64,000 nucleotides of DNA from Ascidiella aspersa (Eukaryota): NCBI GenBank assembly GCA_963924565.1, contig OZ004614.1, positions 24,118,001 to 24,182,000 on the forward strand, given 5' to 3'. A model generated the notes under the pieces. That model saw only the letters and a program-made list of their open reading frames with translations, was not told the origin of the DNA and did no database searches. The translations under genes were made by a program, and so were the position numbers. Positions 9,126-42,566 of the stretch are shown here, piece after piece; within the stretch, counting starts at the first letter, position 1, and every line of letters starts with the position of its first letter.

Positions 9126-11144
9126 GTTTGAAACTTATAATATGTTTATGTTGTTCTATTGTTATTGGTTTCCTTTTGTTTAACTTGCTTCGCTTAATTG
9201 CACTTCACTTCTTGTTTTATTTCGTTTCTTGCCATTACACCTTTATTTTCGCTCGTAATCACTCATTGTTTTCCACTTTTGTTTCAGCCCTGAAGGGTCG
9301 TTTCTTCGTTTGCAATGCGAACCGTTTTTATAGCACGAGGGCAGTCTTGTTTTAGTTGTGGTGTGAGACGGACACTTTAGGAGCAAGCCAGCTGGCGTTC
9401 GCGCGTTCGCTCAATAAAAGAGCCCACCGTTCAATATTAGGTTTGCTAATTTAGTTGTATGCGTACACCAGATCAGAGACAGGCAGTTAAGCAAGAACAA
9501 AATATGGCTTAAAATTCAGACATGAAGTGACGGATTGAAGAAATGGCATAAGCTTCAATATATTTACTTCCATCATACCGAGAGTTGCAAATCAGAGCGC
9601 AATTGGTTTTTAACCGATCTCACTAATGGCCACAGCAATTGCAAATGTCTTGGGAAGGATGCAAGAATATTTATACCATAGTGCCGTGGTTCTGAACTAG
9701 CGTCCCATCGAACCCTTGGGGTTCGACACAGCTGTTTCAAGGGTTCGGCAAGAACGTCCTCTGAAACTTGGGCTGGTTGTATTAGAAAACACCTTGTATT
9801 TTGAAGTTTCATTTTGAAGACTTACATTGCATAAAAGTCAAAAATATTTATGGAAAAACTTTAGTTTGTTTTTGAGGTTTTCTGCTAAAATCGTGATTTC
9901 CATTCAAGATTACAACGCTTAATTCCTTGATTGTTACAATTTACATTAAGCATCAGGTTAAAGTACAAGGTTATGTATTTGAATCAAATTTTCAATCATA
10001 TATAGTTTACAATTTATTTGAATAACATAAATAGAATAAAGTAACCAACTTAAGCGCCCAGGTTAAATATTTGAAATAAGTTCGTAATACATATTTTACA
10101 AATATCCCTATATTCGAAAGTGCAGACTGATACCAACGTATATTTTTTTATAAATTGACATTTTGCTTAATAATGGAAACAATTGTGTTTCCAGATTATG
10201 AAACACATCACTAAGGCTTAGTAAAATATTCAGCTATTCTATAATTGTTATAAATTTAGCTAAAAGCATCACCAATAACAGTAACGCATAAAGCGGAAAT
10301 TCAAAAGAGATAAATATTTATATTTTGTTAAAAACATCCTTAATATCTGCAACATAAAACTGAAATAGAAAAAAACGTAGAATTATAGCTACAGTGTTTT
10401 TGATTCACACGTTTGCATTAAATTGCTTTTAGCAAAATGTCTATAAATTGGAAAAATAAATTTAGTGCTGGAAATCTAATTTTATATGTTAGTCCCCCTA
10501 ATATGCATATTTTAATTATTTGTCGTTGTTTTTAACACAGTGTACTTTCTTAATAGGTTAATGTTCGGCATGACATTTTGAATTCACGTTCATGCTAACG
10601 CAACTTGTTCCTATAGAATCATAAAGAAACAGACACAAATTCTTTCCAAGTATGATCTTTTATTTACTTTCCATCCCGGCGAAAGACAAGCCTAAAAATC
10701 AAGGTTTGTAATCAAATGTCTTCAATTGTATATTTATACAACTCTACATAATAGCCCATCTAGGATTATTAAATGGGAATAGGAATTTTAGTTATTACCT
10801 AATTCAAATTTGACACAAAGTCCAAAACCATTCGTTTAACGTCGGCGCAGAACAGAAATTATGTTTTTTTATCAAAATTAATTTTTAAACAATTAGGACA
10901 ATTTTTTTAAATGTCCCTGAAGCACTCGCCTCAATTGCATAAGATAACGTTTAAAATTTGTCTGATCCTGGTTTTATTTGGATTTCAATTTTAGAGTTTC
11001 ATTGTTGATTAGTGAACTTGGTTAAGCGAATTGTAAAAAAATACTGTTTTTGTTTATTTAGCTTTAGTTACAGTTGAGAAAAAGTTCAAATTTAAGTTTT
11101 GCCACTGTCCCCATAAAAAATATTTTATTTTGTTGTTACCGCTT

Positions 11145-12381
11145 TCAAGCCTCTGGATTCAATACAACTTCATCTGCATCGAAGTCTTCGAAAGCTAAAA
11201 ACAATAATATTGCACTTCGCGGTTAGTTTGATTAAAACTTTTATCCAAAAGAAATGGCTGATGATTAGCATTATAAACATTAAATTAAAATAACCAGAAT
11301 AGGTATACTCTAGTACACATATAAATTATTTTAATTAATCACTCTTTAAAAAAAAGCAAAACTCATATGCTACCTTCAAGATTTTGCCTTTCATCCCTGA
11401 AAAAAATATAGTGTTATTACAATTGATTTGTAACAAATTAATTAAAATAACGATTGTGTATTTTATTACTACAACTAGGATTGTCGGATGCATTTTATTA
11501 TGATGCAGATGCCAAATAATTTGGACAAAAAGTATTGCAATTAAATAGCGATAATGACGTCATTTCTATGCTTATACAAGCAAATTTGATGAAATGTTTT
11601 ATTGTTTGAAATTTGCTTTAATGTTACCAAGTTTAAATACATAGAGTTGTTAATCTCTTGTTTTTTGATAAATGCATCATAAAATGTAGAAATGACTTGA
11701 TTGGAATGCAAATTATTGGTAAAATCGTTACAATAATTTGGTATCGGATCGGTACCGATACCGACCTAGTATCGGGCAACTACCGATACTACCACTGGGC
11801 ATCGGGGATCGGCTTTCATCCGATATTATCAAACATCCTTAATTACTACAGTGCATAGAAGCACACCTTACTCCACTGCATAGCGGTGGTACCAGAGTTG
11901 GATCAATTGTAATTTGTAATTGATGTAATTAATTATAGGTTTTAATGTAATTGTAATTATAACGTAATTGTGGCACTTTCGTTCTGTGTAATTCTAATTG
12001 CAATGGTAATTTGCTAAAATTTTGGCTCAATCAATTGATATTGAGAAAATTGAAGTTCCAATGCCGAAAATTGTAATTGATGTAATTAATTACAGTTCTA
12101 ATGTAATGATAATCGTAATGTAATTGAAACATTTAAGGGAGTAATTGTAATTGCAATTGAACTGAATCTATGTAATTGATCCAACTTTTTTGGTAAAATA
12201 ACATACAACTAAAATACCCTCCGTTGCCAATATAAGTTGGTTATTGCACTTACCCGCACCACGTTCCAGTGCACCATCTCCTTCTTCTACCTCCGAAAAC
12301 CCTCCGTCTTCTACCCGCCTCTGTCGCCGACAGCAGCAGACAAGTCATCAAAAGCACGACCAAAAGCAGCCTAGAGTTCAT
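11145..12381 (-). CDS. Secreted Arg-rich peptide precursor, copy 1 (putative antimicrobial peptide), 66 aa
   Basis: Exons 12381-12254, 11396-11374, 11194-11145 give MNSRLLLVVLLMTCLLLSATEA-GRRRRVFGGRRRRWCTGTWCG-DERQNLEAFEDFDADEVVLNPEA*. Signal peptide, cationic core and anionic propiece; canonical splice sites; AATAAA just after the stop. Confidence 0.82.
11476..11842. mobile_element. ATCGGT-repeat MITE in intron 1 of peptide gene 1 (paralog ~41670-42032)
   Basis: TAGGATTGTCGGAT...ATCAAACATCCT ends; clustered GGTATCGG/CCGATACC repeats; related pieces at ~5830-5900 and ~35375-35450. Confidence 0.5.
11893..12192. mobile_element. GTAATT-repeat MITE in intron 1 of peptide gene 1 (paralog ~42082-42377)
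   Basis: Ends AGTTGGATCAATT / AATTGATCCAACT; dense TGTAAT repeats. Confidence 0.6.
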
Positions 12382-12778
12382 TGTGAGTTGCACTAAGTTT
12401 ACACAAACTGAAAAGTAAGATAACTTGGTTAACAGTGTACGGATAAGCCGATTGCGGCGAAATCCTTTGCACGAATTCAGTCAACATTTTCTGGCTCAGT
12501 GCATTTCTACTGTCGCTGCACAAGCTTTCCAAATAAACCATATAATTCAAACTTTTCTTAGGTTGATCACTAAATAATGAATAAAAAAATATCGTTGGAA
12601 GCCGCAGATTTCCGATTACAGTTCGATGTAATGCGCCAAAGAGAGAATATAACTTTCGACAGTCGCAATATATTTGCAGAAATATCCTAAACGACGCATA
12701 GAATCTGAAGGCTGCTCGCGTTCTTTGCGTATAACGTGAACAACAATTTAGAACCAATTCACTAATGCACTGTCTATA

Positions 12779-40574: not shown

Positions 40575-41340
40575 GTTTACAAACTTTGATTTAAACGCTT
40601 ACGATAAAATTGCTTTCAGCAAAATGTCTATAAATTGAAAAAAACAAACAAACTTACTGCTGGAAATCTAATTTTATATGTTAGACCCCCTAAGATGCCA
40701 GGATATTTTTTGATTATTTGTTTGTTTTTTAACGCAGTGAACTTTATTAAAAGGTTAATGTTCGGCATGTTATTCTGAATTGACGTTCTTGCTAACGCAA
40801 CTTGTTCCTATAGAATCATAAAGAAACAAATACAAATTCTTTTCAAGTATGATCTTTTATTTACTTTCCATTCCGGCGAAAGACAAGCCTAAAAATAAAG
40901 TTTTGTAATCAAATGTCTTCAATTATATAGTTATACAACACTTATAATAGCCCATATAGGATTATATAATGGGAATAGGAATTTTAGTTATTACCTAATT
41001 CAAATTTAACACAAAGTCCAAAAACCATACGTTTAACGTCGGCGCAGAACAGAAATTACGTTTTTTTATCAAAATTAATTTTTAAACAATTAGGACAATT
41101 TTTTTGAATGTCCCTGAAGCACTCGCCTCAATTGCATCAGATAACGTTTAAAAATTGTCTGATCCTGGTTTTACTTGGATTTCAATTTTAGAGTTTCATT
41201 GTTGATTAGTGAACTTGGTTAAGCGAATTGTAAAAAAATACTGTTTTGTTTATTTAGCTTTAGTTACAGATGAGAAAAAGTTCAAATTTAAGTTTTGTTA
41301 GTGTCCCCATAAAAAATATTTTATTTTGTTGTTACCGCTT

Positions 41341-42566
41341 TCAAGCCTCTGGATTCCATCCAACTTCATCTGCATCGAAGTTTTCCAAACCTAAAAACAA
41401 AAATAACGCACTTCCTGTTATTTTAATTAAATATTTTATCCAAAAGGAATGGCTTATGATATTAGCATTATAAACATTAAATTAAAATAACCAGAATAGG
41501 TACTCTAGTACACATATAAATTATTTTTATCAATCATTAATTTAGGAAAAGCAATATTCGTGCAATACCTTCGAGATTTTGACTTTGATCCCTGAAAAAA
41601 ATATAGTGTTATTACAATTTGAAAGTAACAAATAAATTAAAATAACGATTGTGTATTTTATTACTACAACTAGGATTGTCGGATACACTTTATTATGATG
41701 CAGATACCAAATAATTTGGACAAAAAGTATTGCGATTAGCTATAATGACGTCATTTCTATGCTTATACAAGCAAATTTGATGAAATGTTTTCTTTTTTGA
41801 AATTTGCTTTAGTGCTAGGAAGTTTAAATACATAGAGTTATTAATTTCTTGTTTTTTGATAAATGCATCATACAATGTAGAAATGACTTGATTGGAATGC
41901 AAATCATTGCTAAAATCGTTACAATAATTTGTTATCGGATCGGCACCGATACCGACCTAGTATCGGACAGCTACCGATACTACCAGTTGGTATCGGGTAT
42001 CGGCTTTCATCCGATATTATCAAACATCCTAATTACTACAGTGCATAGAAGCACACCTTATTCCACTGCATCGCGTTGGTACCAGAGTTGGATCAATTGT
42101 AATTTGTAATTGTAATTGATATAATTAATTATAGGTTTTAATGTAATTGTTATTGCAACGTAATTGTGGCACTTTAATTCTGTGTAATTCTAATTTTAAA
42201 GGTAATTTGCTAAAATTTTGGCTCAATACATGGATTTTGAGAAAATTGAAGTTGCAATGCCGAAAATTGTAATTGATGTAATTAATTAAATGTTAATCGT
42301 AATGTAATTGAAACATTTAAGGGAGTAATTGTAATTGCAATTGAAATGAATCATTGAAATTGACCCAACTTTGATTGGTAAAATTATATACAACTAAAAT
42401 ACCCTCGGTTGCTAATATAACTTGGTTATTTCACTTACCTGCACCACGTTCCAGTGCACCATCTCCTTCTTCTACCTCCGAAAACCCTCCGTCTTCTACC
42501 CGCCTCTGTCGCCGACAGCAGCAGACAAGTCATCAAAAGCACGACCAAAAGCAGCCTAGAGTTCAT
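41341..42566 (-). CDS. Secreted Arg-rich peptide precursor, copy 2 (putative antimicrobial peptide), 66 aa
   Basis: Exons 42566-42439, 41591-41569, 41390-41341 give MNSRLLLVVLLMTCLLLSATEA-GRRRRVFGGRRRRWCTGTWCR-DQSQNLEGLENFDADEVGWNPEA*. Exon sizes are identical to copy 1. Confidence 0.82.

Follow-up and report, generated by a model that had tools for sequence, protein, structure and literature searches.

Ciona antimicrobial precursors consist of a signal peptide, a cationic region, and an anionic proregion, and several of them carry RRR(R) blocks (Ohtsuka & Inagaki 2020, PMC7387483). For two Arg-block peptides, KH.C1.640 and KH.C7.94, the MICs lie at 3-6 uM, and KH.C1.640 is induced by LPS in haemocytes; haemocyte expression together with antimicrobial activity has been reported for both of these peptides and for the Ci-MAM/Ci-PAP families (PMC7387483). 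An uncharacterized candidate segment from Ciona intestinalis, KH.S1007.2, begins FGRRRRVPGRRRRWW and passes through N-E-R into an acidic part, and a synthetic 23-mer, which lacks a Cys loop and extends into that acidic sequence, was inactive or weakly active against E. coli (PMC7387483). Because the screen that produced these candidates excluded cysteine by design, loop-bearing relatives would have gone unreported (PMC7387483). As for processing, one peptide of Ciona haemocytes is known to be cut free between Gly and Asp, with amidation to follow (PMC10888236). The gene that we describe here had been likened in the earlier note to ascidian antimicrobial precursors for its order of signal, cationic core, and anionic tail, and it and its genomic relatives do fit that layout as documented for Ciona (PMC7387483).

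Two copies of a three-exon gene

By the window we mean the whole 64,000-nt stretch of Ascidiella aspersa DNA that was analyzed (C8:24118001-24182000). The features of the two peptide genes within it are as follows, in window positions.

12462..12501, minus strand: conserved 40-nt block, -120 to -81 from the ATG, with 3% divergence among five copies versus 9-20% in adjoining sequence
12408..12409, minus strand: acceptor-like AG after the pyrimidine run TCTTACTTTTCAG, 26 nt upstream of the ATG
12381..12254, minus strand: copy 1 exon 1, 128 nt, beginning with ATG and ending in GG followed by GTAAGT, phase 2
12316..12381, minus strand: first part of copy 1 exon 1, the start codon and 22-aa signal peptide, as read from the sequence
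12256..12315, minus strand: second part of copy 1 exon 1, the 20-aa core GRRRRVFGGRRRRWCTGTWC, identical in five loci
12254..12255, minus strand: final GG of copy 1 exon 1 (phase 2), with the donor GTAAGT at 12253..12248
11397..12253, minus strand: copy 1 intron 1, 857 nt, from its splice sites
11890..12190, no strand assigned: dispersed, MITE-like repeat of ~300 bp in intron 1, from the genome search
11374..11396, minus strand: copy 1 exon 2, 23 nt, with acceptor TTTTTTTCAG and donor GTAGCA; finishes the junction Gly and continues as DERQNLE
11195..11373, minus strand: copy 1 intron 2, 179 nt, from its splice sites
11145..11194, minus strand: copy 1 exon 3, 50 nt, acidic end of the tail, with TGA at 11147..11145
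11124..11129, minus strand: copy 1 AATAAA polyadenylation signal, 16 nt past the stop
42439..42566, minus strand: copy 2 exon 1, with signal and core the same as in copy 1 and junction codon AGG (Arg)
41569..41591, minus strand: copy 2 exon 2, 23 nt, from the three-exon model
41341..41390, minus strand: copy 2 exon 3, 50 nt including the stop, with AATAAA at 41325..41320

The stretch at 12381..11145, in which the earlier note had seen an Arg-rich precursor hidden in three small exons, is confirmed as a real three-exon gene. Exons of 128, 23, and 50 nt with canonical splice sites, joined and translated by script, give a frame of 201 nt that encodes 66 aa with zero internal stops, and the splice sites, frame, stop, and AATAAA all lie where that model requires. 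The precursor comprises a 22-aa signal, the 20-aa core, and a 24-aa acidic tail. We called the signal peptide by reading its n-, h-, and c-regions off the sequence: a short basic n-region (MNSR) is followed by a 13-residue Leu/Val-rich h-region and by SATEA, in which positions -3 and -1 are occupied by small residues. The core holds two GRRRR blocks and a W-C-x3-W-C motif, with eight Arg, a charge of +8, and two Cys spaced C-x4-C. The signal, the two blocks, the Trp/Cys motif, and the acidic C-terminal piece that had been described are all present on the minus strand, and the remark that the ORF track mostly missed them was fair, as the ORF list at a minimum of 20 aa contains only the 47-aa exon-1 frame of copy 1.

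Copy 2 (42566..41341) is identical to copy 1 in signal and core and differs from it at 8 of 24 tail residues, which bears out the claim of a constant core and a variable propiece; the codon at the exon junction encodes Gly in copy 1 and Arg in copy 2. In every copy a TAA follows the junction codon directly and in frame (12250-12255 and 42435-42441), a consequence of the phase-2 intron beginning with GTAAGT, so that unspliced RNA would encode the signal, the core, and one residue without the acidic tail.

Upstream of the coding sequence, the AG at 12408..12409 recurs in each of the 11 C8 exon-1 modules and has an analogous site in a paralog on C7; it is possibly the acceptor of a 5′-UTR intron or of spliced-leader trans-splicing, its use at present being a prediction. 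The 40-nt block at 12462..12501 is a possible regulatory element or transcript start region. A promoter scan of the C8 copies found no NF-kB-like consensus within 900 nt upstream and no proximal TATA box, a result that we regard as uninformative.

The window is made of tandem repeat units of ~29-30 kb, three of which are seen, and each contains one large minus-strand receptor gene with only weak Ig matches. Each of the two units that lie fully within the window carries one peptide gene, so that peptide genes and Ig-type receptor genes are interleaved, and the ORFs between them have no Pfam domains besides weak Ig matches. The third unit (~56.5 kb onward) lacks a copy of the peptide gene at the expected distance, and the next copy on the chromosome lies 75 kb further. 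An assembly artefact of unmerged haplotypes was rejected, as the units are only 77-90% identical to each other and the copies are spread over 430 kb.

Family, constraint, and relatives

Searching the whole genome (308.6 Mb, 75 contigs) with DNA and protein queries located nine loci on C8, in the interval from 24.03 to 24.46 Mb, that together hold 11 exon-1 copies; it also brought up a weak match on C2 and, on C7, a diverged paralog. Five of the C8 loci encode the identical 20-mer, and the loops elsewhere read CIGIYC, CIGTWC, or CIGGYC in place of CTGTWC; across the family, cores have 18-21 residues, two Arg blocks, and, at their end, a Cys-x4-Cys loop that includes Trp or Tyr. Nine of nine C8 loci keep the AG/GT sites, the frame, the stop, a 23-nt exon 2, and a 50-nt exon 3. 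One exon-1 copy is broken, the loop Trp codon that is TGG in intact relatives having become TGA. The C7 paralog, with core KSRRRAFGGRRRNGCNQRVYRWC and synonymous sites that are saturated relative to the C8 genes, retains the phase-2 junction at GTAAGT, an exon 2 that is likewise 23 nt long and reads GDEAREAQ, and a short exon 3 that is acidic and contains a stop. With five copies of identical core, divergent loops, and one exon broken by a stop, the family shows a birth-and-death pattern, and we conclude that it is a genuine multi-copy gene family of an ascidian, whose members encode small prepropeptides predicted to be secreted.

Two C8 loci, L010 (C8:24062493-24065567) and L006 (C8:24097033-24100163), each have two exon-1 modules, 560 bp apart, that share one exon 2-3 set. 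Every module is complete, with leader, core, donor, and a separate acceptor-like site upstream; the cores are unlike each other, one being of the ...LCIGTWC type and the other of a shorter ...GCIGGYC type, and it is the upstream module of L006 that has the TGA in the loop. These double modules could be alternative first coding exons or a half-decayed duplication.

The five copies with identical cores differ pairwise by a mean of 1.4% in exon 1, as against 6.3% in intron 1, 9.9% in intron 2, 8-10% upstream, and 6-9% in exons 2-3. Exon 1 is the least diverged 128-nt interval of the 2-kb five-copy alignment (0 of 1615 other intervals are as low), at a level 4-7 times below its flanks. The drop coincides exactly with the edges of exon 1, which speaks for purifying selection; for the same reason, broad gene conversion was rejected as the source of the identical cores. 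The 36-nt core pattern has two exact matches in the window against zero expected, and this excess, the nine loci with a paralog on another chromosome, and the exon-1 divergence minimum together set the gene model above chance. Across the nine loci, no indel falls in the 73 columns of exons 2-3, where about 4 would be expected, versus 25 events in 428 adjacent non-coding columns. Between copies E and D, 0 of 66 nt have changed in the signal and 8 changes have occurred in the core, 7.5 of them non-synonymous, so that between subtypes the signal is the more conserved of the two; with numbers this small, we do not claim positive selection.

The ~300-bp repeat of intron 1 returned 363 first-look candidates genome-wide, and the 40 that were scored are 79-94% identical and lie on many chromosomes. 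It is present in intron 1 of the five identical-core copies and absent from the short-intron copies D and G, so that its insertion predates amplification of the identical-core subtype.

In all ten gene models, a core of +7 to +9 is paired with a tail of -6 to -9, which leaves a net charge of -1 to +2. The tail changes in sequence at about the intron (neutral) rate while its acidity stays, a pattern that fits a neutralizing propiece and not a second bioactive product. The border between core and tail is the exon-1/exon-2 junction. The residue at the junction may be Gly, Arg, Glu, or Trp, and the first full codon of exon 2 is Asp, invariant in the nine C8 loci and the C7 paralog.

The weak match on C2 (L020) proved to be a gene with a signal, a triple Arg block, acidic exons, and the same phase-2 junction. 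With its exon 1, 55 matches were obtained on at least six chromosomes, among them tandem clusters that encode R12 heads, Arg/Tyr/Trp-rich cores, and a C-x5-C loop. The C8 genes have the marks of this poly-Arg secreted-peptide superfamily, namely an MN- leader, Arg blocks after the signal, a phase-2 intron past the core, and acidic downstream exons. They share with L020-L034 a leader of the form MN..L..LL...LLL..T-D/E-A with Arg blocks right behind it, and with L020, the one member modeled, the phase-2 intron right after the core and the acidic exons downstream. Similarity between the two groups is weak (E 0.001-0.2), and most superfamily members have no Cys, one Cys, or a C-x5-C pair; the 23-nt exon 2 and the tail of the C8 family are peculiar to it. 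Common descent is nonetheless likely, and from these comparisons the C8 family is, as we interpret it, a Cys-loop branch of a superfamily of at least 50 predicted secreted poly-Arg peptide genes. To call it possibly a new family, as the earlier note did, was therefore an overstatement, given this superfamily and the published Ciona counterparts.

Large sister clusters lie at C7:11.22-11.33 Mb (L032-L034), C3:2.0-2.36 Mb (L031), and C2:26.55-26.60 and 27.47 Mb (L024-L030). Their leaders, MNKL..FALLF..LLL..DA, are followed by R5-R12 runs, by Arg/Tyr/Trp-rich cores, or by R12 and a 34-residue cationic peptide with C-x5-C, and three of the C2 copies have a TAG immediately after the leader.

Searches for homologues were run exon by exon and not with the joined 66-aa model. 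A word-index protein search found no relatives for copy 1 exon 1 or for the C7 paralog, and a profile of the nine exon-1 translations found none among 1.84 billion proteins, its only match (P0001) being rejected as an unrelated 595-aa repetitive protein. No homologue was returned by a sequence search of the PDB, the best ESM Atlas score was 0.76, which is not meaningful, and no Pfam family exceeded its cutoff. Membership in the Pfam families Toddler, GPR15L, and IgaA was rejected, as all three matches are sub-threshold and probably driven by the leader and basic residues; Toddler and GPR15L are both small, basic, secreted ligands, and the resemblance to GPR15L is that of the C7 paralog (L018), at 16.4 bits. 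Literature string searches for the loop and block motifs retrieved no papers, and Pfam and protein searches found no sequence similarity to Ci-MAM, Ci-PAP, styelin, or clavanin. After these searches of protein collections, the one sign of possible conservation beyond the source genome is the short Ciona motif of KH.S1007.2.

Proposed function and its alternatives

We propose, with a probability of about one half, that the family encodes a charge-masked host-defense propeptide. The signal peptide would be removed after TEA, and the two Cys would close a six-residue ring. In storage, the acidic tail would hold the polycation harmless and soluble until it is cut off at the exon-1/exon-2 junction, just ahead of the invariant Asp. 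Where the junction residue is Gly, it would then become a C-terminal amide, and where it is Arg, trimming would remove it, so that genes ending in WCTGTWC would give one and the same 20-mer either way. The freed Arg/Trp-rich, cyclic-tailed peptide would most likely bind and disturb anionic microbial surfaces as a host-defense peptide, and the family was probably amplified for dosage and diversified among paralogs. Two properties of the core temper this proposal. With only four or five hydrophobic residues, it may be weak at seawater salt concentrations, and RRRR is an ideal furin-type site, which might put the survival of an intact core in doubt. The proposal is weakened further by the absent or low activity of KH.S1007.2, its closest look-alike in print, against E. 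coli, by the lack of an NF-kB-like consensus upstream, and by the failure of the protein searches to find relatives.

A secreted polycation whose task is something other than killing microbes is unlikely, and it could take several forms: a masked oligo-arginine, entering foreign animal cells or killing them as a cytotoxic or allorecognition effector, a peptide that binds sulfated glycans or nucleic acids, whether in the tunic or in the granules of blood cells, a partner in charge-driven condensates or adhesives, or a convertase inhibitor of the polyarginine type. Cell-penetrating oligo-arginines have a composition like the 8 Arg in 20 residues of the core, polyarginines inhibit furin, and engineered "activatable" cell-penetrating peptides join a polycation to a matched polyanion, much as the core is joined to its tail here. 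Such a role would also suit the co-amplification of the peptide genes with Ig-type receptor genes, the combination of Arg with Tyr or Trp in superfamily members, and the weakness of the closest Ciona look-alike, KH.S1007.2, as an antibacterial. However, antimicrobial activity is clear for other Arg-block Ciona peptides that share this layout.

We judge it quite unlikely that the precursor is a prohormone in which the RRRR blocks are convertase sites and the products, a tripeptide amide from x-F-G-G and a cyclic heptapeptide (e.g., WCTGTWC, with or without the acidic tail), act as signals. Elements of such a precursor can be recognized: R-R-R-R agrees with the furin/PC consensus, Gly ahead of basic residues is a classic amidation signal, and F-G-G followed by Arg is retained even in the diverged C7 paralog. 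The C-x4-C ring of the family has the size of those in oxytocin/vasopressin, urotensin II, and ELABELA, exon 1 has a sub-threshold Pfam match to Toddler/ELABELA (PF22050; E 0.046, 14.5 bits versus a gathering cutoff of 27), and members of the Ci-MAM family have RRRRW-NE at their cationic/anionic border. Yet the B1b/C1b form is wholly without the x-F-G piece between the basic sites, and the loop, the supposed hormone, is the part that varies most between paralogs. Five identical tandem copies with birth-and-death turnover would be unusual among hormone genes, and both the number of Arg and the matching charge of the tail are conserved beyond the needs of cleavage sites. Moreover, related superfamily genes would give inter-block pieces of two or three residues only; because the spacers are merely FG or CIG, the Arg blocks of those genes cannot serve for cleavage alone.

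Another speculation, which we regard as very doubtful, sees in the product a natural masked oligo-arginine that enters or kills cells. Such a polycation would be inactivated by its charge-matched polyanionic tail, armed by one cut before the invariant Asp, and used by blood cells against foreign cells or microbes, with variety supplied by swapped exon-1 modules, as at the two loci that have two signal-and-core exons and one tail.

That the copies are not working genes, being either untranscribed or decaying relics of the ~30-kb segmental duplications or alternative leader exons of the neighboring receptor gene, is highly improbable: the lack of homologues in large protein collections, the stop in one exon-1 copy, and the C8 copies' want of a proximal TATA box would agree with it, but divergence falls sharply at the edges of exon 1, to a level 4-7 times lower than in the flanks, the nine loci have intact frames, splice sites, and stops with zero indels in exons 2-3, the same build stands on another chromosome (C7), and the stop followed by AATAAA after exon 3 marks both window copies as self-contained units.

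If the core of the proposed host-defense propeptide is active, a disulfide-looped Arg/Trp-rich type would join the short list of tunicate defense peptides, and in a very compact design, a 20-mer with a single small ring and eight Arg. As a natural experiment, the family moreover places several loop variants on one scaffold with core and propiece exactly charge-matched, and such variants would be useful for studies of polycation storage and for peptide design. Co-amplification with Ig-type receptor genes marks a fast-evolving, probably immune, cluster in a close relative of vertebrates.

Comparison with described peptides

In the window core and in KH.S1007.2, a nearly identical double Arg block, G-RRRR-V-x-G-RRRR-W, leads into N/D-E-R and then into acidic sequence, and both belong to the secreted class of signal, cationic, and anionic parts. 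KH.S1007.2 has no Cys loop, and it aligns with the window core and junction if the loop is taken as an insertion, a homology that we infer from a short, low-complexity motif. Since this Ciona look-alike has already been published, the existence of the present family is only moderately surprising.

KH.C1.640, KH.C7.94, Ci-MAM, and Ci-PAP resemble the C8 family in layout, in repeated RRR(R) blocks, and in acidic residues at the presumed cleavage border. They are, however, linear and helical, with no disulfide and no detected sequence similarity to the C8 genes, and they do not form a nine-locus tandem array with receptor genes. The two conserved Cys likewise place the C8 core outside the LCAMP class, which is defined by a linear, cysteine-free amphipathic helix.

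Cationic defense peptides with a single disulfide include the frog "Rana box" peptides, bactenecin, thanatin, and arenicin. Like these, the C8 core is cationic with one small predicted ring near its C-terminus, and the horseshoe-crab tachyplesin precursor, with its signal, mature peptide, and acidic C-terminal extension, offers a parallel for the tail. This is analogy only, as there is no sequence relation and the ring size, the Arg-block design, and the processing border all differ. Toddler/ELABELA is likewise a small, secreted, basic peptide with di- and tetra-basic motifs and a C-x4-C pair; its sub-threshold match covers only the leader and first Arg block of the window gene, which in contrast to it has no receptor-binding C-terminus, carries an acidic tail, and stands in a multi-copy array. 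What is new in the C8 family, as far as its genes can be read, is a tandemly amplified form, with a predicted disulfide loop, of a kind of cationic/anionic precursor already described in ascidians.
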